A DNA stretch of 64,000 nucleotides from Mytilus trossulus (Eukaryota): assembly GCF_036588685.1 (NCBI RefSeq), contig NC_086375.1:33046001-33110000 (forward strand), read 5' to 3'. Positions 2,174-63,897 of the stretch are shown here, piece by piece (position 1 is the stretch's first letter; each line of letters opens with the position of its first letter). The notes beneath the pieces were generated by a model. That model searched no databases and had not been told where the DNA came from. It saw only the letters and a list, made by a program, of their open reading frames with translations. The translations under genes and the position numbers were made by a program.

Positions 2174-4613
2174 TTATTTTCCGACAAATTTATTTGGATT
2201 AAACAGATCGTACTGAAGTCCTTTTCCCATTGACCCGGAAGATGATCCTGAATTTGTTCCACTCATGAACTGAGATGGGTTCATCATATTTGATTGAGAC
2301 ATCATCTGTTGATTCAGCTTATTTGGGTCAAAACTTCCTGTCGATCCACCACTGGAACTTCCACTCTGAGAGCTACTGCTTGACGATCCACCAGATCCGC
2401 CTGAACTTCCACTTTGAGAACTACTGCTTGATGAACCCCCAGATCCGCCTGAACTTCCACTTTGAGAGCTACTGCTTGATGAACCACCTGACGCTCCTGA
2501 ACTCATCTGTAAACTTCCAGAACCCATTTGCGAACCCCCTGAACCCATCTGTGAACTACCAGATCCACCACCTGAACTCATTTGTGATCCTCCAGAGCCC
2601 ATCTGTGAACTACCAGAACCCATCTGTGAACCACCTGAACTCGTTTGTGATCCACTGCTAGAACTTCCACTGGAGCCGCCATTCATAAACATCGACGGAT
2701 CTATCTTATTTTTTTCTGGACTATTAAGTGCATTTGGATCAAACCCTCCTGACCCACCACTTGAACCACTACTCATAGAACTACCGCCACTGCCCATGGA
2801 GCTACTACCGCCACTGCCCATAGAACTACTACCACCACTACCAATAGAACTGCTAACGCCACTGCCCATAGAACTACTACCGCCACTACCCATAGAACTA
2901 CTACCACCACTGCCAATAGAACTACCACCACTTCCCATAGAACTGCCAGTTGGTTTACTGTTGGCGATTTGTTTCAGATTCTGTTGTAACATTTGATTGT
3001 TCAAAGCTGAAGGATTGAATCCACCACTCATAGAACTGCTACCACTGCCCATGGAGCTACTACCGCCACTGCCCATAGAACTACTACCACCACTACCGCC
3101 ACTGCCCATAGAACTACTACCGCCACTACTAATAGAACTACTACCACCACTGCCAATAGAACTACCACCACTTCCCATAGAACTGCCTGTTGGTTTACTG
3201 TTGGCGATTTGTTTCAGATTCTGTTGTAACATTTGATTGTTCAAAGCTGAAGGATCGAATCCACCACTACCCGAAGACTTTCCACCTCCACTACTACCCG
3301 AAGACATTCCACCTCCACCAGAACTTTGTGATTGTGCTCCCCCACTTCCAGCACTTTGCTGTTGCTGAGGCATCTGACTGTTCATGGCATTTGGATTAAA
3401 TGTTCCTGTTGATCCGCCAGAACCTTGTGGTTGTGATCCACCAGAACTTTGTGATTGTGCCCCTCCACTTCCAGCACTTTGCTGTTGCTGAGGCATCTGA
3501 CTGTTCAGGGCATTCGGATTAAATATTCCTGTTGAACCACTTCCTGACGACTGTTGTGATCCACCAGAACTTTGCGGTTGTGCTCCACCGCCACTAGCAC
3601 TTTGCTGTTGCTGAGGAATATTACTGTTTAGGGCATTTGGGTCGAATGTTCCAGTTGCAGAACTACCAGACTTCTGTCCGTTCATGGTCTGTGGGGACTT
3701 TTGTTGTGATGTCATTGTATTTACAGCATTCGGGTCAAAAGTTGCACTTCCTCCACTTGACTGTTGTCCTGATGAACTACCAGATGACTGTTGTGAACTA
3801 CTTGATAATGCCTGACTTGTTTGTTGTGATTGCTGTTTAAATAAAGCATTTGGATCAAAAGTACCCATAGATCCACTACTTGACCCTCCTGATTGTCCAG
3901 AACCACCAGTAGATGCTACACTTCCGGAACCACCAGACGATGCTACACTTCCGGTACCCTTCAGGTACGATTGTACCGACTGCGACTGTTGTTGATACAG
4001 AGCATTTGGGTCGAAATTTCCGAGATTAGTTGCTCGCCTTGCATTTTCTGAAAGAAAGATATCATTGAATATGTTGACTTGTAATAAAGGGAACGGTTAC
4101 TTACTTCACTTATATTTACAATAGTCTTACAGAGTCTGAAAGGCACAGATTTTATAGTGTTACATAATCTGAAAACAAGTTTAATTCTATATAATATGAA
4201 TCCCCCCCTCCCAAAAAACCCCCCGATCCATTACATCATTGTGGGTATCTAGCACCCATAAAGTGTTTATACCACATATATCATAAACCATAGTTCCAAA
4301 TACACGTAGTTAAAAAAGCCGGTGTCTCGGTTTAGTGGAATGGTAACTACACCTGTGAGAAACTATATGTAAAACAACATCGGTTGTCTTTGTTTGGTTG
4401 GGTTTTTATCTCATTGACATTTACACTTATCCATCGTCTAAACTAGTAGACAATACAAGAAGCATTGGCTAATGGATCTCAAAGACATGACAAATTGACA
4501 AATCAGTGCTATTTTGTTTTGTCGAAGGCAAAAAAGTACAAAAACTTACCTCTATAAACTGGAGATCCATGAACGCAACATACTACCAGCAGTACAACTG
4601 TAGCCGTCTTCAT
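2174..4613 (-). CDS. Gene A: secreted Gly/Ser/Gln/Met-rich FDPN-motif protein, ~645 aa; exons 4613-4550 and 4047-2174
   Basis: Exon 1 reads MKTATVVLLVVCCVHGSPVYR (signal-like) with a G|GTAAGT donor. Acceptor TTCTTTCAG| at 4048 joins in frame to ORF 2174-3868 (ENARRATNLGNFDPNAL...). Many FDPN/FNPN motifs; ends FVGK-stop. Confidence 0.85.
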
Positions 4614-5998
4614 GACGATAAAAGAGGGTGAACAATTTAAAATTTGGTCTTAAATTATATTGACGAAACACCTGTCATCCCACAGAACCTTAATCTTGGA
4701 CGTATGACTTTAAACTAAAGATAACTGATAGATGACCTTTCAGGACATGAAGATATAATTTGGTTTACACAGCAACAATTTGATTCCAATTTTTCTTTTT
4801 ACATTCATCAAAATCCAGTACAGATATTTATTTCAAAATCATGACTCGGAAAGGAATGACGTATTGTTTTCACATTTGTCTATTGTTGAAAACCGTAAGT
4901 TGCATCTCTCGTTGCTTTTTGTGACTCGCGTGTTTTTTTAACTTGCTTTCTCTTTCACATTTATTTTTTTGTAAATACGACCATATCTTATTGATATAAA
5001 AAAGACTAGTTGTAAAAAGATTGAAGACAACTATTTTTAATTTCATTGACAAAGGAGGAGCGAAAGATACCAGAGGGACAGTCAAACTCAAAGATCGAAA
5101 ATAAACTGACAATGCCATGGCTTAAAAAGAAAAGACAAACAGACAAGTGTTTAAAAAACCCACTTTTATTAGATTAATTGTTTACTGAAAAGCTATAAAA
5201 GGAATAAGGGTTATACGTAGAGGAGGGAGCAACTCAACTACATCAAACATACATTTTATGCAGAATCGCAAAGAAAAACCACACAGTACAACAGAGCACA
5301 TCAACCACCAGCACCCGACTCCCTCATTGAAATCAGATACTAATATACAAACCAAGACAAACACACGCATGTTATAGAATTGGCACAAGTACATTATATA
5401 TGTGATTAGGTTAAAGCAGATTAACGGGTGCAAAAAACACCCTTTCACTTTCTATACCATCTGACATAAAATCAAAACACACAAATTAAAACCGTCACAA
5501 TGCAGCTACCATCAGGATGTTCAGTAGCATGAACAAGAAAATAAAACACGGCACATAATTTGGAATTCTGGGTCAAAATGTACTCGCTACTACAGGCAAT
5601 TAAGGTAGCTGCAGCTTTTGATATCTACTGAAGATACCAACTTGGGAGAGAATCTTACTTCTGAAATCAATCCATTAATTCAATATCCTTCAACTTCATA
5701 CTTTATTTTGACTTTTATCGCTTTTGATTCGAGCGTCACTGAAGAGTCCTTTGCAGATAAAATACGCGCTGCATGGTGTGCTTAATCATAAACTTGTTTA
5801 GTGTGTCAATCGAAGCAGGTGAATATGTTCCTATACATCTGTGGTTTACAATGGCCACTTGAACGCGAGTCTTGTTTAGTCCCTATGTTTAATTCATTAT
5901 GGTCTAATTTATGAATATTAGATATAAAATGTAGATATTGATCAATAATTAGACAAAATTTAGTATTTAGCTTTTTAATGACATACGATTGAACGATA

Positions 5999-6780
5999 TC
6001 ACTTAAATGTCCTTTTCCCGATAAACTTTCCGGGATCAATGAAGCTAAAACTGGAACTATTTCCACCAGAACTGAATGGATTGGTAAACTGTTGAGGAGT
6101 AAAATTTCCACCGGAAGTAGATGAACTGTTCCTAGATGAACCAGCACCACCGGTACCCCCGGTCCCTTTAAAGAACTGTGAAGGATCGATGAAACTTGGC
6201 ATGAAGTTTGGGTTGGTGTTGTTGCCATTCTGTTGAAATGAAGGATTCATGAATTGCTGTGGTTGAAAATTGGTTCCACTGGATGTAAAGTTTGGATTTA
6301 TAAACTGGTTTGGTGAAAGTTGTGGATTAGTGTTGGAAGTCTGTCTTTTTTCTGTAAATAAAACATGAAATACGTTGTTAGTTATTTTATTGGACCCTTT
6401 TTCCCTCTGATTATTTATAGCGATGTAAGGCATACAAAGTCGAAATCAACTGATTGACTATTATTATATCGCCTCTGTGCAGTCTTGTGCATGTATACGA
6501 ATCTACAACCAGTGTATGCGAATCTACAACCAGTGTTTATTGTTGTCAGTATAAATTTGAAAGTGTTGTATATCCGTACTTGAGTTTTTATACACCACAC
6601 ATACAAAAGAAACATTTATCCATAGTATATAGCTAGAGTCTCAGAAAAGCTCTAAAATATATGAAATTACGTCTCTACAAAATCAATAGAAAGTAGGAGT
6701 AAAAAAAAAATCCACCTACCTACAGATGGTCTGCCAATAACCACAGAAACCAAAAGAAGGAACATTACATAAGACGACAT
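5999..6780 (-). CDS. Gene B: small secreted Asn/Gln/Phe/Pro-rich FxNP-motif precursor, ~137 aa; exons 6780-6720 and 6351-5999
   Basis: Exon 1 reads MSSYVMFLLLVSVVIGRPSV with a G|GTAGGT donor. Acceptor TTTACAG| gives E-K-R-QTSNTNPQ... in the frame of ORF 5999-6433. Ends KFIGKRTFK. Confidence 0.85.
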
Positions 6781-8132
6781 CTTCCAAGTCTATCCAGGAA
6801 CAATAGTAAAAACATGAAAATACTAGTATCTTAACAAGTTGTAAAATAATCTTTGCATCTGTCAAAACTGCTGCCCCAATGGTCTATAATATCATTCATT
6901 TATATTTCACCTGTTGGGTCATGCATTTAAAAAAAAACTAAGTTAAATTGGTTATCTAGGGCGACATTTTCTTTTTAATTTTAGAACAGAAAAGAAGGGT
7001 TTTGAGTTATATAATCATAGATCCATAATACACAATCGCTTAATAAACTAGCGTTATTGGCTTTGCTCATCGTTGACGGCCGTACTATGACCTACAGTTG
7101 TTAATGTCTGTGTCATTTGGTCTCATGTGGAGAGTTGTCTCATTAGCAATCATACAACATCTTCTTTTTTTATAGACAAGCTTTCATCGTTGTTTTTTTT
7201 TAATCATACACCGGACTGTTCAAAATGTAAAGATTATCCTTAAAACCAGTGGGCAGTAGTGCGGACCTTATTCCTTTTTTTCTCTCTCGATAAAGCTACA
7301 CATTCTGACACATAGGCCGGGTAATAAGTGTAACTTTATCGACTTTTAGGTCGACATTCAGCAGAACCGGTGCTTGACAGTTACATTTTGGTTCATGATT
7401 GCCTGTTCAAATTGCTCTCCTTAGTCATAAGAATTGAGATCAGATTTCTGGTTCGCCGTAAAAAAAAACCAACCTGAATCATCCACTCTGATCCAAAAAA
7501 AAATCTCGCTTGATTATATTATCTTCTTTGAAAGAAATTCGCACACACCAAATCGAGAATATTAGTTACACAGTGTTAAATTGTTCCTATACATTTCGTG
7601 TTAGGACAATTGGACACTGTGTAATGAATTTATCCTGATTTTGTTATATTATCTATACTATTAAACGAGAAGACCTCATTTTGGGTGTCGCTTCTCTTCT
7701 TTCCACAATAAATTAATCATCATGCCTCTGTGTCCTATGGGTACAGTGCATAATCGCATTTGTCATCCATTCATATGATTATTCAGATTGTGTTATTTTG
7801 GGTGAAAAACGAGAAAAAAGACGTCCGGATATGTTTCCGTCATTGGGCGAAATTTTAAGTCAGATTATACTTCCGGTTTCCGTTTTTCTGTATACTTTTA
7901 TTTAATAGAAAGGGTCTGAATAATATATCTATGACCGCTGTGGATCAATTATTAAACTGAGAATTGACTGTAAAACGAACGTCTGGAACGGGTGTTTTTT
8001 AAGATCAGATTGTCCATTTCGGGATCCGGGATTTCTCTTTCGGGATATCGAGATATCTAATTTGTATAATAAATTCAGAACGTAGGGATTTCATTTTTTT
8101 AAGCCCGGGATATTGGGATCAGGACCCCTCCG

Positions 8133-9472: not shown

Positions 9473-12400
9473 TATCATTATATTCAAATTCAATATTAGG
9501 ACAATATCAGCCAATCAAATTGCGAGAAATTACACTAAATCAGGATAAATTGTCATATTCAATTTTAAATTTAATACTGTAAAAGAAGATTGATTGATTG
9601 ATTGTTGGTTGCTTAACGTCCAGTGGCTGTAAAAGAAGATATCTATAGAATGTATAAATGGTATATATATGTATATACACTGTCATACAACAAATGACTT
9701 CTAAATACATAATAATTATTTGAATAATTGTAGGAGAATTTTAACCCAAATTACACCTTATTTATATTCAATTGTAATGAAACCTTTAATGTATAAACCT
9801 TTTATACTTTTAAATACTTCGTTTTAGGTAAAGAAAAATCATAATTGATCCAAAGTGCAATTTGAGTCATATTTAACATGCAATAGAAATTTTAAACTGA
9901 CAACCTTTATACTCCACGTGATGAAAGTAGTGCATAATTGATGATGTTCTCGAACTTATTGATAACTCAAAATTTGTTGACTAGGTTGAACTAATCTATC
10001 CGATCGCACTCGATAAAGGATACAAAAGATACAGCAAAGTCAGCCTCCTATCTTGACCTAAATGTAAAAATTGTCAAGAGGGTCGGAGGAAAACAACGAC
10101 AAATGAGATGATTTTAGCTTCCAACTGGTGTACTGTTATTTGTCTTTCTACCTTTTATTTGCCATGGCGTTGTCAGTTTATTTTGATTGATGAATTTGAA
10201 TGTCCTTTTGCTAACTGTCACATCGCTTTTCCGTATAAAGAGTATACAATTTTACTAGATGAAGTACAGCTTCAAAGTGTTTCTGTTAGATACATTGCTA
10301 GAGATCAGGTTTCTGTGTGACGTAATTGCTTCCCTTTTTAGTAGATGCTTAGACAGTTTTGTTAGTGATTGAGCTTAGTAAGTACTTCTTTAGCTCATTT
10401 GGTTAAAGCACTGCCTTGTTACAACGACGTCACGGTGGAAAGAAAGTTGATTTTGTGTTTAGAATCATGCTCTCCGATTACACGTGTATGCCTACGCCTT
10501 GGCAATAAAAACGACAAATACAAACAGCAGTATACAAAACAGAACATATTTATCTGAAGACAAAGCAACAAAAACAACGCCCCGGAAGGGTAAGCAAAGG
10601 TCCTGCTCCACTTGTTTCACCCGTCGTGTTACTCCTATAACATAGATCAACAGTAGGCACCACATAATAGTGGATTGGTAATTGACTTGTGGATAGTTGT
10701 CTCATTGGCAATCATACCACATCTTCGTTTTTATATCTTATCGAGACATTGCCACTTTTATAAACCAGCGTTCAAGTAAATTTTCTAACTCTGAAGTTTT
10801 GCCAAATATGAAATTTTAAAATTAAAACACATTTTCCAAGACAATAAGATAGACTGGTTGATAACGGTATAAACAACAGGCATTCAAAAATAAAAAATAA
10901 ACATAAAAGAACAACAATCATAACTAAAGCAAGAGTTGCAAAATACAATTAAAAAATACAAGCGGTGACGTCACGTGCTCCTAACGGATAAACATATCTT
11001 GCTTTACACGTGAAACCCATTGTGTTGCTCATGAAAGTACCCCTGCAAGGATATATTTACTAGTAATTTTGTTAAGATTTAGATGTTATGATTTTTTTTC
11101 TGGGTTCGTGACATACTATGTAAGTATAAGTGTTAAAGTGCACTTTGCCACTGGACACTAAGCAACCAACAAACAATCATATTACAGAACACGAAAAATA
11201 CAATATTAAATAAACCAAACAAAGGTTTTATTATTTTATAATTTATATGAACAAAAGATACCAAAAAATCCTTCTTTGTGAACTTTTGTGAAAAAAAAGT
11301 GTCTCAATATTTTGGCCCTACCTCTCCTAATATTTGTAGATGTATAAACACAGCTTCGAAGGTATGTCTTTCTACTTTTATCACCGCGTTTCCACAGTCC
11401 TTATCAGTTGGAAATGATTACCCTTTACGGTCACCTATATTTAAGTGAACTTTTGTTTAAGGTTTTAATTCGAATTATAAAACTTTCAGGTTGTTTCCAG
11501 TTTCTTTATCATGCTTATATGAGAATGCAGATTATCAGCAATAATTTAGTTCCACCATGTTTCTATTGTAATCAATGCAGCGAAATGGTACCTTTACATG
11601 TATACGCTCTTGTTCCATTTCTAAATCGATTTTAGGTTTTGACTCTTTCCCAAGTGTGGTTTTATGCAGAAAATAGTTTATAAGGTCTACCTTTTAACAT
11701 GTCCTGTAGTTTGGTGGTAGTCTTTAGTTCGTGTCTGACACACTCGTAAATTGTTTTGTTATAAATCGATTAATTTGTTCCATATCGGGACCATTTATAG
11801 CCGACTTTATATATTGTTTGCATTTTTCTCTTTGATGAAGGCCGCATGGTTGCTTATAATTGCCTACACCAACTTCATTTGATCTTTGATGGATAGTTGT
11901 CTCATCAGTTATCATATCACATCTTCTTATTTTTATATGACTGCTTTATTTAAAATACAATAATGACTGAAGGAACTAGACAACAGAATTAAAAATATTT
12001 AGAAATTAGTTACAGTATACAGTAGTCCTATAATATAAGACTCTGGAGGTTCATATCATTTACATTCAACGTTTTTTATCGGATTTTTTTTTTTACTATC
12101 AATGTTGAACCCCAGAGTCTTATAAAATTTGTAACTTTTTCTCGTAGCAAAAATTTAAATTAATAATCCACTGCCAAAACAAATAAAATTATTAGGAACA
12201 ACCTAAATATGAATGAAAGTAACTTCTTACCGCATAAATAGTTTGAAATAATGTTACTAATCCATCACTTTTATCCTCAGTTGGCAAACAATTTTCTTCT
12301 CGCCATTTTATTTCAAATATTTGCGCCGATTCATAAATTTATGGATTTCGTGAATGAAACGAATTTGACGATATTATCTATAATCAGTATAGTACAACGT

Positions 12401-12805
12401 ACGAAAACACGACCAATTACTGTAATAGTGTCATGCAATTGATCTATACATTAAAGGCGGTGAGAGAATACAATTGGGGTTTACAGAATAGAGAACAATT
12501 GGCCAAAACATAAGTAATAGAAAATATGGGTTCTATTTTTTTTTTAAACTTGATGAAATGCCCGCCCCAAGAAAAAAAAAGTATAAGTACATTGTTTACA
12601 GTTGAAAGGAATAATGTCCAAAATACAGTCATAATGTATCAACAGATTAGTTAAAAATATGTTTAAACATAAATTGTAGGTATAACTTATCATTAATAGT
12701 TCGTACCCAATAATTCTTGTAGGCTAGTCAGTCAATCGTCGGTGAAATCTAGTATGTTGTGAGAGCTGGTGATACATGTCCTTCAAAATACTAGTTCATA
12801 CAACA

Positions 12806-12957
12806 GTGAGCGAGCCAATTCTCATTCACCGAAAGTTCTCTTGTCCAATTGTAAAGCATCAGCCGCAATAAATTTCTAGTTGTAAGAGCGGGGCGATAAA
12901 TTTATTTCAGAATACGAGTTCATTCACCGGGGTGAGCGAGCCAATTCTCATTCACCA
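12806..12957 (-). repeat. Left internal copy (~1.2 units) of the 126-bp repeat, inverted relative to the right array
   Basis: GTGAGCGAGCCAATTCTCATTCACC occurs twice and is the reverse complement of the unit at 19114-19770. Confidence 0.85.
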
Positions 12958-13088
12958 AACGTTATCGTGCATGTATCAATAGAAATAAATAATAGCTGGC
13001 GAAGCAACATTTGCATTGCAAAAATCGAGTTGTTACAAAGAATATAAGCAAGTTGTTAGAGAAGACAGTTGAGAAAAAATCGTCAATT

Positions 13089-14460
13089 TTAATCTCTCGG
13101 TGTTTGTAGAAACTCTTCAACACTAAATTTGCTCCTTTCTTGACAAGTACAGTTTTTTGAACACTCTGCACAACATTTACAGGCAGGACACCGGCACTGC
13201 TGCAAATCGCATCCTTCGCATTTCTTAGTATCTAATTTGTCTTCTTTGAAGTTGTCTACGGTCAATGAATTTACAATTTGACGTCTGATACAAGTGCTGG
13301 TGTTTTTTTATGATATCACGTATACATTTGCCGGTGGTTTTGAGCGACAAAGTAAAGTTATCATATAAAACAAAACTGAATCCATCTCTGCCATCCCTTG
13401 CGCATCTGCCAGCTTCTTGCCAATAGGACAACACTGATTTCGGACATCCTATATGAATAACAAGGTCTATGTCCCTGATGTCCAGTCCCATACCTAATGC
13501 GACAGTAGCAATTAAGCATCGGATTCTGCTATCTTCCCGTTTAAACTCTTTCAGGATGCGTTCTTTAGAGTCTTCCGATGTACTCTTATGGAACATTTCC
13601 ACAAGCAGGTTACTTGCCTTTTTATCCTGATTTGCATAAGCATGTAATTGAAGGTTGTCTTTTAAACACAAGAATAAATCGGACACCCTATCAATTGACC
13701 TACAGTAAACCACGATTTTCTTGGAATTTACTCCGTTTTCCCTGATATAATCAATAAGCCATTTTAGTGAAATTTCAAAATCATTACTGTCGCTTTTCCT
13801 TATTTCAATGAAGATGTTTGGTCTATCCGGTGACTTGAAAATAATATCTGTGTCAGCATCTGTCAACTGCAACGTTTCCATGATGTCATCCTTAACTTTC
13901 TGTGTGGAGGTTGCTGTCAGTGCCATTACGGGTGCACTGAAAAAACTTCTAAGTTCATGCAATGATTGATAGTCTGTCCGAAAATCTTCCCCCCATTCAG
14001 AAATGCAGTGTGCTTCGTCCACACATATCATACACAAACGAGACTGCCAAATACTTCCAAGGAAGACCTTCTTCCAGAATGGTTTCAGTACAGATTCGGG
14101 TGAAGAGAATATTAAATTATATTCTCCATTAGAAATGCCCCTTATAACGTCTGTTTGCATGTCTGAGCGAGATGTAATTTTTGCACACTTGATGTTCCAA
14201 TTTTCCAGGGTTGACATCTGATCGTCTATCAAAGACGATAACGGGGAAATAATAAGAGTTATAGGATTTTTGTCCATTTGTAAAATGACTGGCAACACCA
14301 TGCACATTGTCTTTCCAAAACCTGTTGGAAGCAGACACACAACATTCCTCTTCTGTAAGGCTGCTACAGCCACCTCAATCTGCTCTTCTTTCAGCTCAAA
14401 ATTTATATTGTAACTAGATTTAATCTCATTGAAGTTTGTGCGTACACTTTCGGCATCCAT
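13089..14460 (-). CDS. RecQ-like SF2 helicase of the Academ element (~456 aa after correcting a 1-nt frameshift at 13303-13309)
   Basis: Motifs LPTGFGKT, ISPLSSLIDDQ, VDEAHCISEWGEDFR, ALTAT, ATVALGMGLD and QEAGRCARDG. Removing one A from the A7 run gives KNTSTCIRRQI...CEGCDLQQCRCPACKCCAECSKNCTC (RecQ-type Zn-binding tail) ending at TAA 13091-13089. Confidence 0.88.
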
Positions 14461-14514
14461 CTCGACTTTTTAGCGCGCTTTTTCACGTCACATGATTCTA
14501 GTACATGTACCACC

Positions 14515-14902
14515 ATGGCCACGTGTTCTAACTGTGATCGAGAATTTGAAAAACGACATGACAATAAAGGATACTTTAGGTTTTCTTTGGAAAAGCCAAC
14601 AACCTCTGGTGGGGTAGCAAGAGAAGAGTTGTCAGCATTAACGGGTGTTCCGTTTACTCCTGTATCTAACAAACGTCAAGGTCAATTTTTGTGTCCATCA
14701 TGCTGGTCAAACCTTAATGACACTGTACGATATAAATCATCTTTACATGAACTTTGGGGAAATACTCAGGCCAATTCCTACATTGGAGGGAAGCGTGGCT
14801 CAGATGGAATAAAACAGTCTTCCACAGTAAAGAAACCAAGATTTACAAGTACCCCGTTGAAGGTATTTTTTTTATCCTTATATATATATGAAATTATCTC
14901 TC

Positions 14903-14964
<62 letters not shown>

Positions 14965-17900
14965 ATGAAATGTGTTTTATATTACAGCCGATTGCATTAA
15001 GTGTGTAGGTAAAGGTAATGGTATACTACCCTCTTTTCGAAGTAGATAGTCCTACAGACAAATAAACCGGTTATCTGTCGGACTAGTCTACTCTTAAAGG
15101 ATGGTAGTTGACATACTAATTATCCAAATAATGACTTCACGTTTAAGGTAGAAAGCAAGAAACAAATATTACCTTTACCTACACACCTAATGTAATCGGC
15201 TGTAAAAGAATAAAAATTCATCTGAACTGATTTGTCTTTTTGCGTAAGATTTCTCAATGCCCAAAACTTTTTCTTTCTAGGCCAAAAAAGCCGGGAAATC
15301 ATTGTTCCAGAAAAAAGCCACGAGGAGCTCAAAATGGGATTCCATAATAGGATTTGTGCGTGCGAGGCAGTATGGTAGAGCCATAAAAGGATTGTACGAG
15401 TCGACTAAGGGGGCGAAAAGACAATTTATGCGGTTTGTCAGTGGAGTTGTGCGTAAAGAAATAAAGAATGTTTTAAAACCTAAAACAACTTTCCCACTTT
15501 GTATGAAGGCAGATATTCCATCTATAACAGATTTCAGCTGGACCCAGACCTTGTCCGACTTTGAGAAATCAGCACCAATTACATACAACGTATTTAGAAG
15601 TGCTATAACACGGAAGTCTGAAGAAGCTACGTTGTGCAAAGGAAAAACAGTCAACTTAAAGCCAAAAATAGGAACAGCAGTTGCATATCTCCTTCATGCT
15701 AAGGCTCCAATAAAGGATTCCTTTATTCCTACGCTAGTATCTATCCAGTTTTGGCGGGGAAATCTCAAGCGAGATACTATCAAACAAATGTCAAAAATGG
15801 GGATCTGTAAGGGGTATGGGGCAACCCTTGCCGCTATAGATAATATCAGACGCGAGTTTGATTCGGCTGCAACATCTTGCAAAAGAGAAATTGAAGAACA
15901 GCTCACAAATGTCAATGACATATCAAACATGACCGTCATGGAGGAAGACATGGACGTGTCGAATGCTGTAGCAGTTACGGTGCCAAACATCGAAGACGAA
16001 ATTAATGAACCATCTGACTCGGATGATACAATCTCTTATGAGTATAGAGAACCAAATGAGGATGGATCTGAAGAAAGTGAGAGCGATATTACAGAGGTTG
16101 AGGATAATGATGAAGATTCTAAAGAGGATGAAAATGATGATATTGCCGAAGCATCAGATAACGAATCCATACATGATGTGTCAATTCGATCAGAAACCAA
16201 TCCTAAGTTGCAACCAGGTTTCTCAATGTGTTGGGATAACGTTGGTAAAAAAGTAACATCACGACACCCAACCCTTACTTCAACCAACAAGTATATCAAT
16301 ATGGCACTTGGCTACATGGCTGTAAATCGTGTTACGACTACAAATCTACCATGGCAGTTTGACGATACAGTAAAAAAAGCCATAGAATTGCCGCAAGAAA
16401 TTTTCTTTCCCAGTCAAACAGATTTTAAAAACGTCAAAAACAGAATGGAAATTATTGTTGGTCGTATCATAGGTCGTCATTTAAAATGGTTTAGTGATAA
16501 TATTAGCGATTGCATTATACCACACGTTGTTCATGGCCATTCTGCAGAGTCTGCTCATAGAAGTGTGCTCGTAAACTTGGGCGTGTTTGATGTTAACCCA
16601 TCTTCAACACAAGGTGCCATAACTATATATGAAAATCTGCAACGATATGTTCCATCAATAGCCGGAAACCCTTACACGACAGCTGTTTTTGGTGATGGGC
16701 TTAGTTGCGAGAGGGGAAATGATGCCCACAGGGCGAGGGCTAACGGTCTTAATCCCTGGGATAGATTGGAAGGATGCGAACCTTCAGCACAAGAATTCCA
16801 CAAGGAAATGCTGCTCCTTCAGGATTATTATGATTTATTGTTTAAAGGATCTAGTGCAGCAGATAGAGGCACGTTAGTCCATTTGAAAAAATTATTTAAC
16901 TTCAGAACAGTAAAATCCGACGTTTCCGATAATTTTACTCATGCCTGGGAATTGATGTGTCTAGCCACGGAGGGTTTTGTTTGCTTATTAACAATGCAAA
17001 TTACGGAAATGGAAGATGCAGATAGTGAGCCTGCAAATATTGAGACCACGCTTGTTAATGATGACTTTGAACAACGTAATCAGTACTTTACGGATGTATG
17101 CAGCACTGTCGTTCAAAGATTATGGCATACACTGAACACCAATGCTCTCACAGTGGACGATGGGACTGGACCACCCGTATTTTGTTGTGGAGAAGATTTG
17201 GACGACGACACAATTGCATGCTCTGCAGGAACAAACTGTACACATGGAGAAGTTTTCCATTACATGTGTGCAGATATCGATCCGAACAACCTACCCGAAA
17301 ACTGGCACTGCACTGATGAATGTAGAAACCGTACTAATTTGTACGCGTTTTGCCATTGCAGACAAAACTTGGGAAATGACGAGCCGATGATAGATTGTAC
17401 GGCTGGATCTGCTTGTACAAACAGAGAATGGTATCATATGAAATGTGTCCATATCAATCCTGAAAATGTTCCAAAACGCGACTGGTTTTGTCATGATGCC
17501 TGTAAAACAGCTAAGAGAGGCAAGAGAAAGCGAGGAAAGAAAAGTGTTGACAAACCAGAACAAGTTTCGGATCATATTTATAACTATAGTCGTTCAATGG
17601 CCTGGCTGGGTTTGAATTTATTGTGTAGACGAGATGCAGTACGGGAAGCAGATGGCAATGCAATGATTACACATTGGAAATTAGATCTTGTTCATTTCTT
17701 TGCCTCAAAACATCCAAAATATCTTATTCTGGCGCATAGGTTACTGGCATCAGTACATGGCTGGCTACCGGAGAAGTTACGGGAGGATATCATCCACAAT
17801 CGGACAGTGAATTACGGTGGTGGCATAGGGCGGAATTTGCCGATGGATTTCATGAATGAGATATTGAATAGACTGTTTAAAGAATTGCTGAGTTGTGCAA

Positions 17901-18235: not shown

Positions 18236-18366
18236 CAGCTAATTTTCAGTTGATAATATTTTTTTCAACGGTCAATTTTGACGAGGTGTATTATTTTACA
18301 TTGTTACAGTTTATTGATTAAAGGCGGGAAACTTTATCACGTGGTATAGGAACATCGTGTACAAAA

Positions 18367-48500: not shown

Positions 48501-51500
48501 ATGGCACCGTTAAATACAATATTTACATTTTTGTGTATGGTCAGTTTGACCAAAACTGACCGAAATGGTGAGTCTGAATTTGTCACCTTCAACAATTTCG
48601 CGATGAAATTCTAGACAAAAATCTTATTTTACGTATTTATAATTTATGTAAATTGGTTATCGAGAAAACAAGCGTCACGGATGATATACCAAAGCAAAAC
48701 CACTATTCAGCTCCCCAACACTCTTATGAATAATCAGATCTCGAAGTTTTTGATTACGTGCTCACAAAGTGTATTAATTTAAGATTTATAATCTTTTTTA
48801 TCACTTGTCAATATGATAAAGACAATATTCATATTATTTATAAAAAAAAGAAAAAAAAAAAAAAAAAAAAAGAAGAAGAAGAGAAGGGAGATGCCATACA
48901 ATTGTAATCAACACCATAAGTCGACTTAAGACAGGAATCTCACCGTCAAATTAAAGAAAGAAAAAAAAACCGAACAGATAAACATTTCTACAAAAGACAT
49001 AATCCATAGACCAATCATATTCTTATATGAATAAATCGTGTGAAACGTAGGTATTTTCTATTTGTTTATAGGGCTGCCTCCAAATTGTTTAAAAAAGTCA
49101 ATACCTTGTAATTTTTTTTTTATAAATAACATACTTGTTGAAGAGAAGAAAACATTATTTTGGTTTTCCAAAAATGAATATTTAATTTACATGTTTTGGA
49201 AGTAGACAACTTTCACGCTTTGTAAACAAAGCTTTATAAAAGATTATACATATGTATAAATGGCGTAAGAACGATATAAATTCAACAAATTAGTGTTACA
49301 ATTATATATTTTGTTCCTGATACATATATTGACATTTACATGAATATTATCTAGTCCATGTTATTCGATACTCTTATATATATATATTATTTGTTGATGT
49401 ATTTTTTACAGTGCGACAAAGTTTCAACCCTAATTCAATGATGGGAAGTTTTCTTGGTGGATCATCGTCGTCATCTTCTTTGTATGGAAGCTTCAACCCA
49501 AATAAGATGATGTCACAATACACAGGCGGGGGTTCTAGTGGTAGCATGTTTAACCCTAATGCTATGATGGGAGGAGGTCAACAACCGCAGCAACCTGCAA
49601 ACAGTGGTCAAAGTTCACAGAAAAGTCAATCATCCCAATCTACAAATAGTCCTCAACAATCAGGAGGTAGTCAGTCATCTGGAACTGGAACGTTTGACCC
49701 GAATGCTCAGATGTCATCGGGTGGTTCCGGTGGCACCTCTGGTGGAAATCAATTTGGAGGCATGTCTCAGTCATCAGGGGGATCCGGTGGCGCCTCTGGA
49801 GGAAGTCAATTTGGAGGCATGTCTCAGTCATCAGGTGGGTCTAGTGGAAGTATGTTCAATCCCAATGCCATGATGGGTGGTCAGCAACAACCAATGAACA
49901 GTGGGCAAAAATCACAACAGAGTCAATCTTCCCAGTCGACAAATAGTCCTGCACAATCAAGTCAGTCATCTGGAACTGGTATGTTTAACCCAAATGCGCA
50001 GATGTCATCGGGTGGATCTGGCGGAACTTCCGGTGGCGGTGGAATGTCGTTCAATCCGAATCAGATGACGTCTGGTGGAGCACAACAAATGAGTGGTAGT
50101 GGTGGTGGTGGTGGTGGTAGCAGTTCAAACACAATACCAAAGTACAACCCAAACAATGCTGTAAATACTGGCGCCAAATATGACCCTAATGCTGCAAACA
50201 GTGGAATGAGTGGTTCTTCTGGTGGAGCAAAACCATCTTTTGCCAACGGTATGGGGTTAAATGCAAAACAACAAACGCCTGGTGGACAACAGACTACGAG
50301 TCAACCAAGCCAACAACCCGGATCACAATCCGCGTCTAGTTTTGGTCAAGCATCTGGTCAGCAACAACAATCGGCAGCATCTAGCTTTGGACAAGCTTCA
50401 GGTCAACCATCACAGTCTTCAGCATCAAGTTTTGGTCAAGCTTCAGGTCAACAGCCACAATCGGGTTCTGGAAGTCAACAGCCTCAATCTGGCTCCGGAA
50501 GTCAACAGCCTCAATCTGGCTCTGGTAGTCAGCAGCCTCAATCAAATTGTGGACAGCAAGGCTCTTTTGACCCAGTAGCCGCCAATACAGGAGGAACTTC
50601 TGGTTTTAACCCTCTTAATCCACTTTTAGGTATGATTGGTGTCCATGAGCAGATAATTGTGCAAATTATAAAACTACTCCAAGATCAGTTAAATTAAAAA
50701 AAAAATATGCAAACTTTTCAGTAAATATTTGAAAATTTAATTCCTCTAAAGAAAAATTTGTATTTCAACACATTAAGCTGTAATTAATGCTGGAACACAA
50801 ATGTATCTCATAAACGTTAACTTTCACTGAATAATATATAAAGATAGAAATATTTGTTCGATAAATGCATTGTTTTTTCATCTATTTACACTCATCTGAT
50901 ACATTTCGCAAACTTTAACTTATTTAGTTGCTTTTCTTATATTTTATAGGAGGAAATACTTTGAGTAAAATCATGGGACCGAACACAGGATGTGGTAAAT
51001 ATCTTCATTAACACTTGCTGATGATACATACTGGTAGTTCATCTTATTTCCACCTTATTTACCCACAACTCTAAATATTTTCAAAGTCATCTAAAATGTC
51101 AGTATTTGTCTGACTGTTTCCTCAGAATTTCACAGCAGGGCCATTTGCTAAATTCTTCCAGGCTGGAATAAAATGCAAAACCTTTTATATTCATAAATAA
51201 CAGATCATTTTGAGATAATTGTATTATTTAAAAGATTTCGGTCTTCAGTATAAAGGTTCCGTGTTAAGGTATAACTGGTTAACTCAAGAATAGTAATACA
51301 GATACCAGTCAGAATTATCACTATTGTTGTTATTAGATTTAAACTATGAATGTTACAGGTAAAAGTAATGGTGGTTTTGATCCTGGATCTGTCAATATGC
51401 AACAAGCCCAACTGGGAACCAGCTTAAACATGTTTGGCGGAGCTAAAGGAGGAGACCCAAGTAAAATGGATGCAAGTTCGTTAATGGGTGGATCCTCTGG

Positions 51501-54500
51501 AATGATGAGTGGAGCTAATTCAGTGATGACTCCAGGTGGAAGCAGTGGCGGGAGTACTGGAGCCAGTAGTGGAGGGGGAATGAATTTGAATCCAATGAAT
51601 ATGATGAGCAGTATGACGGGAGGATCCGGAAGCGGAAGTGGGAGTGGTACAAATCCCATGAACGCAATGTTGGGAGGAACATCTGGTACATCCAGAGGCG
51701 GAAGTAAGAGTTTTGATCTCTTACATTTCTAATAGTTACAACTTCAAAAAAGAAAGTTTAAATGAAAAATGTTATGCTTTTTTTTCACCCAATGCTTTGC
51801 GCTTTGGTTGTTTGGGCATTTTTTATGTGGTTGATATTATGAAATGCTTGATGTAGCTTGGTGCTTAGTCTTATAATATATGCCTTCGAATTATTTTTCT
51901 CTTTTATGCGGATATTTTCTTTATTTGGTTTTGTTGCTACATTGATAGTAAAATAAATCGAAAAAAAATTCACAAATATCAAACTGAATGAAAAGAAAAT
52001 ATCAGAAATAAAATTAAAAAAAATAATGGCCCGAAGTCATGTGTTATAGGACTAGCTTTGTTTTGTGCTTTGCACACGCTTCTTTTAAGACTTTTAGACA
52101 ATATTTATTTTAGACAGTGGCTCTGCAAGTCAAAGCGGAGGACAGACGGGTGGTAATCCGTTGGATCCTTTAGGGGCGATGATGGGTAGGTGGAATATTT
52201 ATCTATATAATGTGATCATTATAGCCGGTATTTGGCCTATCAAATGGCAGAATATCAAAATTGTCAGTTTGTATATAGGTTTTAGGTAAAATTGTGAATA
52301 CGAGCAACATTTATTTCATTCACATCAAATGTATTACAAGATTCAGTTGCGAAATAGTATATAGTTTGCTTATCTCTATGTTTTAAAATGGACCTTTTGA
52401 TTATAAACAAATGTAAAGACCTAAATTCAAGTAATTTGTCAAAATAATGTCTTATTAACATTTGAAACACTTAAGTTGAAAAAAAATGAAAAAAAAGTAT
52501 TTTCTAACTTAAAGGCCTACCATTGTTTTCCATCTATTAAACATACTTATTATTGCATCTCTGAACTTTTGAAACTTTCGATTTATCAAATGACAGTTGT
52601 TATAGCATGTCATTGAAGTACATACATTTGTTTTCTTAGAAACTTGTAATTCTGTTTTATTTTCATTACACCTTCACTTTTTATGACACTACTTTTGTTG
52701 TCTTTATTTTCATAACTCGAGGCTTGTTACGTATTAGAATCAACATCTTGTATATGTGTTTATCTTATTGTATTTATTTTGTAACAGGAGGTGCCCAGAG
52801 GTTTGCAGGAGGTAGTAATCTGATGGATCCCATGGGTTTTATGAATGGTAACTGAATGAAGTTTCGCTTTTCTCTGCTTGATTTTGTATCAATCTAAAAT
52901 ATATGCTAATTTGTTTACCAAAAAAATATTATTTAAAGTCTTGTTTTGTTAGAATTTCAGATCATTTATATCAAAGTATCATCATATGTTTACGTGTACT
53001 TGTTTACTATTAAACGTCTGCTGTATTGATACAAAATTATACCTTTGGCGCCATATCGTAAAACAATTAGACCCTGCATGCCTTGTTTGCCCCGAAAACT
53101 GATCTAAAAAATATAAAACATCGTGTTGGTAAGCAGTTTGAAAAACCATATGTGAGAAGACAATTTTGAAAATTTGTAGCAATCCTAAATCAGAGAAACA
53201 ACTTATTGCTGTTCCTAATATACATATTTCACAAAATCATATCGGACCATTTTCAAAAATACGTAGCACATCCAATACAATTTTGTCCAACAAGTTATTC
53301 TTCATGCAAAACCTGGCGTAGATTTAATTTCTAATCAATGAATGTATTTCAGGAGGTGGACAAACTGGTAAATTTGGAAACCGGTTTTCTGTACCCTTAA
53401 CAGGTACGTACAACTTAATAATATATGTTGACCATAGTTAAAAGCTGAAGATACAACATACTAAATAAATGCATCGATAGATATAATATAATAATTAATT
53501 TCATAAATTATAACTTTAAACATGAAGAAGACGTAGTTGTATGGATTGCAAAAAAAAAACAAAAAAAACGGTTGCTCAATGAATATGCCACAACAATCTT
53601 GTGAAGATTGGAAATAAATATTGTTTTTATAAAACTGATAATTTTCAAGATACAAGATATCTATATCTCGTTTCGCAGACGTTAACTTATCATTATCGGT
53701 TTGATACTATATCACCCGTGACGTAGCTCGGACAGGTGCATTTCGATTACCAAGATGTCAACCAAGTTATTGTTTTGTGTATATTTTGTAATTTCAGGGA
53801 GATCTTTGCAGATAGAAACGGGTAAGTAATCTATTTTTTATTCAAACATTTACAAATATATAGAATAAAAAAATTAAGAGTCTGCAGATACCAAGAGCCA
53901 ATCAAAATCCATAAGTCGAAGTGAAACAGACACACGGCTAAACGTTAAAACGACGTCAAAAAGAAAATACATAGAAAATTGACTTAAGTAGATTTGGATC
54001 GTTTTTATAAAATGTTAACAAAATTATAAAAATTAATTTGAATGTAATTATTCAGAATGGAAAAGGGGAATGAACCACATAATTTACAGGATAATTTTAT
54101 TTGACACATAACAGTTTGGCAAACACTAATTATGATCATTGAGAAACTTGTTTTTTCCTTAGGTGTATTAAGCCTTTTAAAACATACTACAGCCCACACA
54201 ACATATCACAGACGTATTTGATTAAATTGAAAATAAACTCGTCATAGATACAAGTATTAAAATTCTATATTTGTGCAAGATGCGCTTTTCGTCTACAAAA
54301 TACTCATCATTAAAAAGTCAATTACAGTTCGAAGTTGAAGAGCATTGAGAACTAAATGTTCCTTAATTTTTTTCCAAATACAGATAAGTTAATCCATTCC
54401 TGAGTTAAAAAAGCCGTTGTATTTCAAAAATTCGAAATTTCGTAAACAGTTAATTCATAATTATGACTATATCAATGACAATTCATTTCAACACATGAGT

Positions 54501-58659: not shown

Positions 58660-59748
58660 TCAGAGTTACTTCCGATGCCATTAAAGGTAATACCATGTTT
58701 GACTACCTGTCGCTGCTTGCACTGCTATGCATTTGCGGCATGGATGTTATTTTACAATGTTTTAATGTTTATGCGTGGCATTGCTCGCCATTTGTCGTGC
58801 TGGTCAAGGGCATTGTATTGTTCTTCTGCAATAACTACCTCTGTTGGTCAGGTGAGATTTGAGAATTTCGTCTCTGACGGTACCTTTGAGCCGTTAAATT
58901 ACCCGGAACATGTATCAAATCCGTTTTATAGTTATTAGAGATAGCCGCCCACATCATGACACGTCCCCCACTGAGGCTGTCCACTTCTTGGATACACGAG
59001 AGAGGAAAAGGTCCAAACATGCGCCGGTAGTCAAAAGTTCGTCTTTCACGTTTCAGAAGCATAATAAAGGAATCATCACTGAACAATATTCTGTGCCAGT
59101 TGCCCTGTCCCTTATTATGTTCCATCATTAGACTCTATTCTCTCTGTGTAACGGCCTCAAAACTGGTTCAAAATGTGACCTCCTGCGTCCAATGTCATGT
59201 TGTCGCAGTCGATTGCGAACTGTTTGTGAGCTGATTCTTCAATCCTGGTATCCTTACTGCCTGTTACGGCAACGGTTCAATTAAATAGATGAAATACCCG
59301 AAATTAGTGATTTTTCTTATAGTCGTTTTGCGAGGTCGTCCACACCTCGGGTGGTCATTGGTACAGCCAGTCTGTTGATATATGTTCCAACGTCACAACA
59401 TTGTGCTCTAGTTAGCTTTTTTAGAATAGCAGGGCTCTACCTTGACATTGCAGCGTTTTAACGTTGTGATGACTTACTCGGGTTTTATATGCATACAAGT
59501 GTAACAAATGACAACAAACTTTTAGGAAAAACATTGGCAGAATTTCGCGGCGTAAAAGGTCCTATGCACTTTTAGCGAGTCGCAAATGTCATGTGGCAGA
59601 GAGCCAAATAATAAAAACCCGGACATTTAAAGTTTACAAATTACCTATTATAATTCGAAGATGCAATTGACCGTTCATTGTACCGTGTAAAATATATTAT
59701 TTTCTATTTGAAAAATTCATCCAAAGTATGCGTTTCTTTTTTAACAGT
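58660..59748 (-). pseudogene. Degraded Tc1/mariner transposon
   Basis: ORF 58835-59128 has WHRILFSDDS and GGRVMMWAAIS...LIHVPGNLTAQRY (Tc1 DDE region). TIR-like CTGTTAAAAAAGAAACGCATA on the minus strand near 59725-59747. Confidence 0.8.
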
Positions 59749-61519: not shown

Positions 61520-63897
61520 CATTCGTTCCAGGAGATCTTGGATTTTTAGGAAAATTTGATCCAAACCAATACTTTCAAAACTGTAAGTAGTATTCATGTA
61601 ATATTATTTTATCAATCTTTAGTCAGTCTGTTCAAATTTTAGTTGAATATTTCTGGTACTTTATATTTGCGATTTGCACATATGACTTTATTTTCATTCT
61701 TTATAGTAAGATTTCATATTAAAAAAATACATCTTCATTATATCAGAAAGGAGGTGCATTTAATGACAGCCTGTGTTTTGCTTTTTAAACTTGTATTTTT
61801 TTCCCATCTCAGCAATAAATAACAAGAAAGCTTGGAAACAGACCTGGGACGGTTCTTGGCCAAACAAAGGTAAGACAAAACTATAATAAAACATTTAAAT
61901 GATGATATTTTTTCTATGATATTTTGTCATTTGTACGAGAAAACGTGTATGCTTAATCAATCTCTCTCAGCTAAAACAAAACCCTCATCAAATATACCAG
62001 ACCTGTAATTTTGTGCCTTCTTCAAAGACACTTAAGTAACGCTCAAATGAAATAAATATAAAGGTTGAATAGAGTACACGTACAAAGATGAAGAACATTG
62101 GTGATCCAAAATTACAAAGGCTAAAAGATATTTTTCATGCCGACATTATCATAGACGATGATTCAAATCAGCAGCAGTTTATCGATGTTCAAATCTCATT
62201 ATCGATTAAGAATCGACATTAATTTATCAGTTAATTGTGTTGGGAATAAAAAAAGGCTTATCAAAAATTGAAAACAACACGTTTAATAATTTCTTGCGTC
62301 CGAAGCGCTTTTTCTGGATTTACCTTCATCTGAAACGCTCAAAGCCAAACATTTGAAATCCGAAGATGTACCGAAACCGTTGAAGAGCTATATTTCAAAA
62401 ATACCAAAAATAAATAGCCAAATCCATCTCAAGACAACTTTGCCTGAGTGAATTGAAACCTTAGTTTCTGAATAATTTCAAAATGTATAAACGGACAATT
62501 TTAGTGAAGTTTGTTAAATCATGTCAATACCGAAGTACTCGCTACTGAGCTGATGATACAATCGGGGACTGATACTACACCAGCAGAGTTATCGACCCAG
62601 TGGTGTAAACAATTGAAAGCAACACGTTTAATAATTTATTGCGTACGAATCAAATAAAATTTTACTTCTCTTATCATAATACTAATTATAATGATGATAA
62701 TGATAATAACAGTGATAATAATAAATTTGATATCTGTTATTCTCTTTTATGCTGCTGCTTATGTATTCAATAAGTTCAAGACTGTTATAATTCGTCAATT
62801 TAATCATATCTTTGAGATTTCTCACACAAAGTATTATTCTCAGGTGGAAGCCAAAACGAACTGACGACGACTAAAGCAACGCCATCAGAAGTGGACAAAG
62901 AATCGCGTTTTGGGAATACAGATATTAAGGAAGAATTAGTTCAATCTGCTCAAGGGAACAATAACCACCATGGTATGTTCTTTTGTTGTCACTATGATGT
63001 ATGTTCTTATGTTGAAATCATAATCTTTCAGTCAGTTTAATGGAAGTCTGGAGCTGGCATATCAGTTAACTGCTAGTAGTCTGTTGTTATTTGTGTATTA
63101 TTGTCATTTTGTTTATTTTCTTTGGTTACATCTTCTTACATCAGACTCGAACTTCTCTTGAACTGAATTTTAATGTGCGCATTGTTATGCGTTTACTTTT
63201 CTACATTGTCTAGAGGTATAGGGGGAGGGTTGCGATCTCACAAACATGTTTAACCCCGCCGCATTTTTGTCAGGAGCTTCTGACCTTTGTTAGTCTTGTA
63301 TTATTTTAATTTCAGTTTCTTGTGTACAATTTGGAAATTAGTATGGCGTTCACTATCACTGAACTAGTATATATTTGTTTAGGGGCCAGCTGAAGGACGC
63401 CTCCGGGGGGGAAATTCTCGCTACATTGAAGACCTGTTGGTGACCTTCTGCTGTTGTTTTTTCTATGGTCGGGTTGTTGTCTCTGAGACACATTTCCCAT
63501 TTCCATTCTCAATTCTATATTGTAAAAATTTCATCGTTTGAGTCTAGATTGAACATCTATCAATACCGAGAAGATTTGCGTGTTTGCACCTTTCCCGTCA
63601 GAAAAAAATATGAGAACATGCACTTCAGGCCACTTCATAACTACTATTAGTTTAAAAAATATGTAGTGAAAATCAGTAAATTGTATATAATTTTAACACA
63701 GTACGATTTTAACACAGTGATGTATAAATCCACACTTGTGCAATGTCTGATGGATTTTCAAGCATATAAATATAATTGACATATACATGTCGAAAGGAAT
63801 TTAAAGATTAAGAAACTCCATTAAATCTTATGCTACCCCTCATTATACATTCTAGAGGTGAAGGATAAAGTAAAGACATGGGACGGATCTTGGCCAG
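61520..63897 (+). CDS. Gene H (partial): micro-exon gene with FDPN and repeated TWDGSWP motifs; exons 61520-61582, 61813-61869, 62844-62972 and 63856-63897
   Basis: Four phase 1-1 GT-AG exons of 63/57/129/42 nt are stop-free: FVPGDLGFLGKFDPNQYFQN / SINNKKAWKQTWDGSWPNK / GGSQNELTTT...NNHH / EVKDKVKTWDGSWP. Start exon not found; the gene probably continues beyond the window. Confidence 0.7.
63010..63520 (+). mobile_element. Repeat family 1 copy in a gene H intron
   Basis: Matches ~32100-32575 and 474-883. Confidence 0.75.

Follow-up and report, generated by a model that had tools for sequence, protein, structure and literature searches.

We analyzed a 64-kb stretch of the Mytilus trossulus genome (contig NC_086375.1, positions 33,046,001 to 33,110,000; 34% G+C, no N), hereafter the window, in which all positions below are given. 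Within it lie seven paralogous genes, A to G, that form a tandem cluster and encode secreted, intrinsically disordered proteins. The cluster spans about 50 kb of a 1.3-Gb genome assembly and is transcribed outward from a common middle, with minus-strand genes A-D on one side and plus-strand genes E-G on the other. A six-frame scan of the window recovered 42 F-[DN]-P-[NS] tetrapeptides, which were concentrated in a few long open frames; the motif-bearing frames lie at 2.2-4.1, 21.4-21.7 and 24.7-25.2 kb on the minus strand and at 35.8-36.5, 42.1-42.9 and 49.4-50.1 kb on the plus strand. All seven gene models begin with a short hydrophobic exon that starts at an ATG and ends at a phase-1 GT donor, followed by a long low-complexity exon whose frame is preceded by a matching AG acceptor with a pyrimidine tract, and the open frames are intact throughout. 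Signal peptides were called by eye together with a hydrophobicity scan. An initial annotation of this DNA had described eight FDPN/FNPN genes with products of about 117 to about 888 amino acids and a short phase-1 signal-peptide exon in A-G. The size range (C, 117; E, 888) and the signal exon, which was seen in all seven genes and whose joint was confirmed by RNA for C and D and by the NCBI model for E, both held. The eighth gene was dropped: candidate H is a lone possible mini-exon of 63 nt (61520-61582, plus strand; AFVPGDLGFLGKFDPNQYFQN, ending in FVPGDLGFLGKFDPNQYFQN) with one motif, and it did not match the family profile significantly (E-value of 5.8).

On the minus strand, gene A is predicted from sequence to encode 645 amino acids. 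Its first exon (4550-4613) specifies the signal peptide MKTATVVLLVVCCVHGSPVYR and ends at the phase-1 donor GAG/GTAAGT, and its second exon with the stop (2174-4047) supplies 623 amino acids (Ser 32%, Gly 23%, Gln 11%) with 11 FDPN/FNPN motifs, RR close to the N-terminus, the C-terminal end FNPNKFVGK, and internal tandem duplications of 123, 72, 57 and 48 bp. Gene B, likewise a sequence-derived model (137 amino acids), joins a signal-peptide exon at 6720-6780 (MSSYVMFLLLVSVVIGRPSV, phase-1 donor) to an exon with the stop at 5999-6351, which starts with (E)KRQ and ends in FIDPGKFIGKRTFK. The two smaller genes have introns that were confirmed by RNA. Gene C (117 amino acids) consists of an exon at 22891-22939 (signal peptide MNLLIFLTVLIPTCYS, phase 1) and an exon with the stop at 21390-21694, whose 100 amino acids carry FDPN, FNPN and FSPN at roughly decapeptide spacing and end in FDPNSFGKK, and gene D (164 amino acids) consists of an exon at 25559-25619 (signal peptide MKGCLALLCLLPACLSAPLS, phase 1) and an exon with the stop at 24717-25150, whose 143 amino acids (Gly 29%, Phe 13%) include five motifs and end in FDPNKLNSFGK.

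On the plus strand, gene E encodes 888 amino acids from an exon at 33011-33050 (signal-peptide start MTVFTIFVGILVS, phase 1) and an exon with the stop at 34036-36662. The latter has a conserved segment at its N-terminus, a linker rich in Thr and a C-terminal F-[DN]-P-x-x-Phi-N array, and the conserved core lies at residues ~686-760. Exon 2 is 100% identical to an 888-amino acid NCBI protein (P0001) of M. trossulus, and the NCBI model takes its N-terminus from the predicted exon 1 and uses the acceptor at 34036. The exon 2 product is also 87% identical to a protein of M. galloprovincialis and 83% identical to one of M. coruscus. Gene F, for which the predicted model remains open at its 3' end, has four exons: a signal-peptide exon at 40129-40189 (MAWTSVILATLLVSHAFAIS, phase-1 donor GTG/GTAAGT), a Gly/Ser/Thr-rich spacer at 41362-41644 that ends in QFLLNPSQFLGGGNQQ at a phase-2 donor, a single module at 42046-42317 (with PNFDPNKVNQIHASFLDPSKLQLG and GFNPDQVNSMLFNFLNPSQMTAGR), and two further modules at 42455-42913 that end in NPQNQLGKR at a phase-1 donor. 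The sequence G-RRRR-Q arises across the junction of exons 3 and 4. Gene G is a predicted five-exon gene (48501-52855; 589 amino acids) in which all introns are phase 1. Its first exon (48501-48567; MAPLNTIFTFLCMVSLTKTDRN, phase 1) encodes the weakest of the seven signal peptides, and is followed by an exon of 405 amino acids at 49412-50629 (Ser 23%, Gly 20%, Gln 16%) with seven FNPN/FDPN motifs followed by M/Q, an exon at 51359-51703 (Gly 27%, Met 12%) and an exon at 52114-52185 (GGNPLDPLGAMM), both phase 1 at either end, and a last exon with the stop at 52788-52855 (NLMDPMGFMNGN).

To assess the transcription of the cluster, RNA contigs of four runs, chosen because they contained gene E, were mapped to 21300-25750. 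The results showed that contigs of runs X11 and X18 skip the gene D intron (25151-25558) exactly, and that a contig of X13 does the same for the gene C intron (21695-22890; joint 21694/22891). The X11 contig crosses the D joint (25150/25559) over 443 nt with zero mismatches and extends 43 nt upstream of the ATG. The skipped segments read CT..AC on the plus strand, which is GT..AG on the minus strand, and neither intron had any RNA depth. Thus, the introns predicted for C and D are real, and the runs selected for gene E contain spliced RNA, which bears out the splicing expected by the initial annotation. Genes C, D and E share RNA libraries, which come from several studies and carry two species labels. 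Within C and D, the runs differed from the window in 28 cases; 21 of the 28 differences fell at the third codon position and 20 of 28 were synonymous (P = 8e-6), and two replacements between runs were exchanges of D and N within motifs. Contigs of all four runs also piled up with 5-12% mismatches at 22045-22491, inside the gene C intron, and at 23237-23385, between C and D. These pile-ups are repeat-derived transcripts from elsewhere and do not belong to gene C.

The motif was found far more often than composition would predict. Counts of F-[DN]-P-[NSD] were 11 in A, 6 in C, 5 in D, 10 in E, 2 and 3 in exons 3 and 4 of F, and 7 in exon 2 of G, while residue shuffles of the same proteins gave means of 0.01-0.14 and maxima of 1-2, an enrichment of 50-1000 fold over composition-preserving shuffles. 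Alignment of 39 motif instances gave the consensus G-[TS]-F-[DN]-P-[NSD]-[AK]-[LMV]-[NM], and the family motif is F-[D/N]-P-[N/S/D]-x-[L/M/V]-N, longer than the F-[D/N]-P-[N/S] tetrapeptide previously assigned to every member. That assignment was upheld for A and C-G; in gene B the strict motif was not found, and the variant F-x-N-P-[NS]-x-F is present in its place. The spacers of A-G are uncharged and made of Gly, Ser, Gln, Asn and Met. By exon, Gly accounts for 8-33%, Met for 0-14% and Pro for 4-11%, and Ser-Gly dipeptides are numerous in A, F and G, with Ser at 19-32%. The claim that Cys, Tyr and charged residues are rare applies to A-D, F and G, in which these residues and Trp are very scarce, but not to E, which has 65 K+R, 70 D+E and 21 Y, along with 15 N-x-S/T sequons and a Thr-rich linker of conserved composition. 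FG dipeptides are frequent in gene D only (10).

We also determined how the motif is distributed over the genome. The back-translated 7-residue motif matched 65 sites in the 1.3-Gb assembly, 15 of which lie within the window, and gene A exon 2 contains six matches; a reversed-pattern control gave 87 genome matches. Outside the window the matches were isolated and dispersed, the one exception being a pair on C7 separated by 11 kb. This pair (C7:10.26 Mb) and another apparent genomic hit at C2:7.97 Mb were considered as further members and rejected as repeat noise. Genome-wide protein and profile searches found each cluster gene once, and the 30 kb of flanking DNA on each side of the window held no additional members. 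From the pattern matches, the flank scan and the single-copy search results together, we conclude that this is the only such cluster in the genome. Internal tandem duplications within the cluster measure 24-123 bp, and the motif arrays grow by such duplication.

The relatedness of the genes to one another was assessed in three ways. Pairwise BLAST with composition correction gave weak local matches, centred on the C-terminal third of E. We then used a hidden Markov model of the E core (residues 686-760 of P0001), built from 13 bivalve sequences with the other cluster genes left out. A, C, D, exons 3 and 4 of F and exon 2 of G scored 29-59 bits against this model compared to 2-5 bits for shuffles (z = 7-23), and the real score was reached by 0 of 300 shuffles of each. 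B and exon 3 of G were marginal, the B score being reached by 3 of 300 shuffles, and exon 2 of F, a pure spacer, did not match the model. Finally, a profile that combined C and D with their homologues from Dreissena and Pinctada was searched against the whole genome, and its only matches were C, D and the C-terminal part of E (E-value of 0.03). Because of these model and profile matches and the shared phase-1 signal exon, the sequences support common descent of A and C-G, or at least the sharing of modules among them. The short spacer-rich genes share the C-terminal motif array of E, and gene B would be a marginal, divergent member of the family.

The family is not confined to Mytilus, a point that the initial annotation had missed. 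A profile of four mytilid E proteins, searched against 1.84 billion representatives, found 24 proteins, and the named matches were bivalves without exception: Crassostrea virginica (LOC111128246), Saccostrea cucullata, Argopecten irradians, Pinctada imbricata, the unionid Potamilus streckersoni, and two adjacent genes of Dreissena polymorpha. They are annotated as uncharacterised or by composition, and database names such as 'homeobox protein 2-like' (M. trossulus) and 'GATA zinc finger domain-containing protein 14-like' (Saccostrea) are composition artefacts. In the 13-sequence E alignment the invariant columns are nearly all motif F, P and N. Identity to Mytilus E was 0.61 for motif residues versus 0.19 elsewhere, and in non-mytilid sequences 0.59 versus 0.16 for the remaining residues. 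The core follows the consensus FGGxF[DN]PSxVNxAVFNPNxVNxxxMNFDPSEMLxKNPGYDKxxAxxYxFDPNKVNxxQxNFxPPFL. Gene E is the old, bivalve-wide member. Homologues of gene D were found in Dreissena (156 amino acids) and Pinctada (155 amino acids) with the same layout, i.e., a signal peptide, directly followed by FDPNALNxNFG, a GFGSGSG-type spacer, a terminal FDPN pair, and the end FGRR or FGRK. E, the anchor gene of the family, and a small gene of the C/D type are conserved across bivalves. D-like and E-like genes lie on one chromosome-scale contig in D. polymorpha (152.5 Mb; P0020/P0065) and in P. imbricata (102.3 Mb; P0013/P0066), which may be a weak hint of ancient linkage. One further relative of E (P0004; 45-49% identical) has 32 near-identical cluster members, many of them JGI/IMG 'metagenome' records on contigs of 1-7 kb, and from this makeup we conclude that it is an animal gene repeatedly caught in environmental or host-associated data sets. 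A search of the metagenome contigs with P0004 for related loci found none.

No characterized family matched these proteins, in agreement with the novelty previously suggested for them. Neither the window proteins nor eight bivalve homologues had a significant Pfam match, those of gene C to 'PMG' and 'Decapeptide' being far below the cut-offs, the PDB held no match to the family profile, and a search of a literature collection of 8 million papers by motif, core peptide, record id and NCBI name found no relevant paper. Altogether, this is a real, previously undescribed family of bivalve proteins.

Helix capping follows simple sequence preferences: Asp or Asn is the preferred N-cap, Pro is favoured at N1, and a hydrophobic pair at N' and N4 forms a 'hydrophobic staple'. 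These rules were reportedly set out by Aurora and Rose in 1998 and by Munoz, Blanco and Serrano in 1995. AlphaFold2, run on E with the 13-sequence alignment, called the protein disordered, with a mean predicted local distance difference test score (pLDDT) of 39, in agreement with the ESM Atlas model of E (pLDDT of 0.33). Within the AlphaFold2 model, a short helix begins exactly at the Pro or Ala in 13 of 14 F/Y-[DN]-[PA] motifs, variant F-x-P sites start helices at the same place, and the conserved core reaches a pLDDT of 63-78. We infer that the motif is a helix N-cap with a hydrophobic staple, in which Phe would be N', Asp or Asn the N-cap, Pro N1, and Leu, Met or Val N4. By the capping rules and this placement of residues, each motif would therefore present a Phe/Leu patch on a small, pre-formed helical turn within an otherwise flexible chain. 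The exchange of D and N at the motif between species fits the N-cap assignment. The nearest ESM Atlas cluster to E, 'Enamelin' (0.77), was rejected, being below the level often reached by shuffled proteins, and ESM Atlas gave no usable match for gene D.

The protein ends carry another set of marks. In the low-complexity exons, dibasic sites are confined to the extreme ends: RR at residues 3-4 in A, KR at residues 1-2 and 112-113 of 116 in B, KK as the last two residues in C, and, in F, the RRRR formed where exons 3 and 4 join and KR at the end of exon 4. The C-terminal sequences are KFVGK in A, KFIGKR in B, SFGKK in C, SFGK in D, LFGRR in Dreissena and SFGRK in Pinctada. A Gly plus basic end also follows the last gene F module (LGKR) and is absent from E and G, and Gln follows the basic site in B, F and G. 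A Gly with basic residues after it classically signals C-terminal amidation, and a basic site followed by Gln is classical for convertase cleavage and pyroglutamate formation. Judged by sequence, the ends of the family look like convertase and amidation marks.

The noncoding DNA of the cluster was also examined. Promoter regions were compared over the 150 bp that precede each of the seven start codons (A 4614-4763, B 6781-6930, C 22940-23089 and D 25620-25769 on the minus strand; E 32861-33010, F 39979-40128 and G 48351-48500 on the plus strand). The E-box CAGGTG/CACCTG occurred 6 times in 5 genes versus 0.48 expected from the window (P ~1e-5), and WGATAR occurred 13 times in 6 genes versus 3.2 expected (P ~3e-5); gene D has CAGCTG in place of the E-box. 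This pattern, recognized post hoc, may reflect common control of the cluster by a basic helix-loop-helix factor plus a GATA factor. No 8-mer was shared among the promoters of the cluster genes beyond chance. The divergent D-E intergenic region contains a 350-bp tandem repeat (25974-27428; 4.2 copies, 98% alike). Genes B and C are separated by a large transposon (12023-21340), the sole foreign coding content within the cluster, with open frames for a DEAD/Helicase_C (RecQ-like) protein (13228-14469, minus strand), a DUF6589 protein of 984 amino acids (15281-18232, plus strand) and a protein of 251 amino acids (18322-19074, plus strand). Outside the genes, a repeat of about 410 bp at 472-884 has at least 40 genomic copies with 95-97% identity on many chromosomes and is a young, abundant short element, and a 99-amino acid open frame at 58838-59134 (minus strand) resembles, by eye, a fragment of a Tc1/mariner-type transposase.

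Most molluscan materials are built from secreted low-complexity proteins, which are usually lineage-specific and hard to compare. The known systems with which we compared the cluster include the scallop hinge-ligament elastomer abductin, to which the Gly, Met and Phe content had suggested a link. Abductin is likewise a secreted bivalve protein rich in these residues and expected to be a random coil, and gene G has two FGGM. However, abductin consists of tandem GGFGGMGGGX repeats with an Ala-rich N-terminal part that has conserved Cys and Tyr, and has very little Pro (PMC13052691), whereas Gly is far lower in the cluster, Pro is invariant in every cluster motif, and the low-complexity members lack a Cys/Tyr part, with no Cys and 0-3 Tyr in mature A-D. 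No 9-mer within 2 mismatches of GGFGGMGGG was found in any cluster exon, and the abductin link was abandoned. The proteins also differ, as had been proposed, from mussel foot adhesive proteins rich in 3,4-dihydroxyphenylalanine (DOPA), with 0-4 Tyr and few K+R per low-complexity exon compared to Tyr/Lys-rich repeats, and from acidic shell-matrix proteins, with 2-10 D+E per low-complexity exon and most Asp inside the motif. There is a likeness in layout to the molluscan shematrins, KRMPs, MSI60 and Met-rich insoluble proteins of Pinctada (PMC7591529), in which, as in the cluster, a signal peptide is followed by Gly/Ser/Met-rich low-complexity sequence. These matrix proteins also resemble the cluster in their tandem paralogue clusters, growth by internal repeats and lack of a globular domain, and the cluster members, too, are present in RNA libraries of several studies. 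In contrast to these mostly lineage-restricted proteins, the cluster has a 7-residue motif that is position-conserved across Bivalvia, almost no acidic, basic, Tyr or Cys residues, and convertase/amidation-like ends.

Our results showed that the family is secreted, transcribed, coding-constrained and clustered, and that it carries multivalent conserved motifs in neutral disordered spacers. The description of the proteins as stickers and spacers fits the sequences, and their reading as a structural material is reasonable and plausible. We propose, with about even confidence, that the co-expressed proteins form an extracellular gel, coacervate or matrix through multivalent helical stickers. In this model, the proteins would mature in regulated secretory granules and be co-released, with N-terminal cleavage at RR, KR or RxxR, which in many cases would expose Gln, and amidation at the C-terminal Phi-Gly-Lys/Arg. 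Many weak hydrophobic helical stickers on neutral spacers would then bind one another or a common partner multivalently, and the sticker contacts would cross-link the chains. Ligament, periostracum, the organic phase of the shell, crystalline style and mucus are candidate materials. The proteins would work like the cohesive FG-repeat domains of nucleoporins and prion-like domains, which share with the cluster short Phe-centred motifs, uncharged Gly/Ser/Thr/Asn/Gln linkers, predicted disorder and very low charge, and whose weak, multivalent hydrophobic contacts produce gels or condensates. This would be a likeness of working and not homology: the cluster proteins are secreted, their motif is F-[DN]-P-N-x-Phi-N and not FG, GLFG or FxFG, and there is no relation in sequence. 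A more specific form of the proposal, in which the family is an ancient bivalve 'extracellular FG-like' class that undergoes prohormone-style maturation and is co-secreted into a multi-component hydrogel or elastomer, such as the matrix of the hinge ligament or the crystalline style, is tentative and in our view rather doubtful. Several points weigh against gel formation. Self-association is deduced from sequence and analogy, the introns of A, B, F and G are predicted, AlphaFold2 confidence is low outside the core, and the helix cap is derived from sequence rules and a weak model. Amidation-type ends are typical of bioactive peptides and not of structural proteins. Furthermore, the sequences printed for insoluble proteins of Pinctada nacre, prism and ligament contain no FDPN-type motif, the literature on ligament and crystalline style describes no FDPN-type protein, and the crystalline-style proteome of a shipworm lists mucin, tubulin and collagen and no such protein. 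Absence from the Pinctada and shipworm proteomes is weak evidence, because trypsin was used and these Lys/Arg-poor chains are hardly cut.

The marks at the protein ends open a different reading, in which the gene products are prohormone-like precursors that give rise to secreted bioactive polypeptides with a signalling, pheromone-like or antimicrobial role and the motif is an element that binds a receptor or target. The signal peptide would be removed, a convertase would cut at RR, KR or RRRR, the N-terminal Gln would be cyclised, and Gly-Lys/Arg would be amidated. Prohormone precursors share with the cluster the signal peptide, the basic sites, the Gln after the site and the C-terminal Gly-Lys/Arg, and the restriction of dibasic sites to the ends of the low-complexity exons, the FVGK, FIGKR, SFGKK and SFGK termini of A-D with FGRR and FGRK in Dreissena and Pinctada, and the modular gene F, with G-RRRR-Q between modules and LGKR after the last, would all be expected of them; short motifs conserved Bivalvia-wide are, moreover, typical of binding elements. 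However, the peptides of known precursors are short (<50 amino acids) and usually multi-copy, whereas A-D have no internal cleavage sites and would yield low-complexity chains of about 100-620 amino acids, only F looks like a polyprotein, and gene E lacks an amidation-type end. Seven paralogues with very different spacer lengths and 5-11 motifs each point to multivalency and not to a single ligand, and neither Pfam nor literature strings matched a catalogued neuropeptide family. We consider prohormone-like precursors unlikely.

Alternatively, the proteins might be soluble, heavily glycosylated carriers of the mucin or proteoglycan kind, whose motif arrays dock a folded partner (a lectin, enzyme, chitin or mineral) without self-assembly, and which would act as a lubricant, mucus component or recruitment scaffold. 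The abundant Ser (19-32%) with many Ser-Gly in A, F and G and the Thr-rich linker and 15 sequons of E would suit such carriers, and helical turns that are pre-formed within disordered chains typically serve to bind partners. Nevertheless, acidic residues next to Ser-Gly, which glycosaminoglycan attachment usually needs, are absent, C and D are small proteins with few Ser/Thr clusters, Pfam finds no mucin-type domain, and no partner was identified; a carrier role is, in our judgement, also improbable. It could finally be argued that the cluster has no function and consists of chance frames in simple-sequence DNA or of decaying pseudogenes, as low-complexity sequence with internal tandem duplications might suggest. 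A homologue search with gene A was swamped by low-complexity candidates and gave zero matches, a result that is uninformative on homologues. The exact GT-AG splicing in RNA contigs, the mostly synonymous differences between runs, the seven intact frames, and the homologues across bivalve orders with conserved motif positions leave this explanation with hardly any likelihood.

If the proteins are ordinary mucus-type carriers, they would still provide a clean new protein family for annotation, and if the marks at their ends are real, they would represent an unusual prohormone-type maturation of large low-complexity proteins. As the chains offer few tryptic sites, they may have escaped standard proteomics of shell, ligament, byssus or style altogether, and the small members C (117 amino acids) and D (164 amino acids) are easily expressed or synthesized. 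The motif is position-conserved in every named bivalve lineage with a match, and may thus offer a handle on how sequence encodes the assembly of extracellular disordered proteins.

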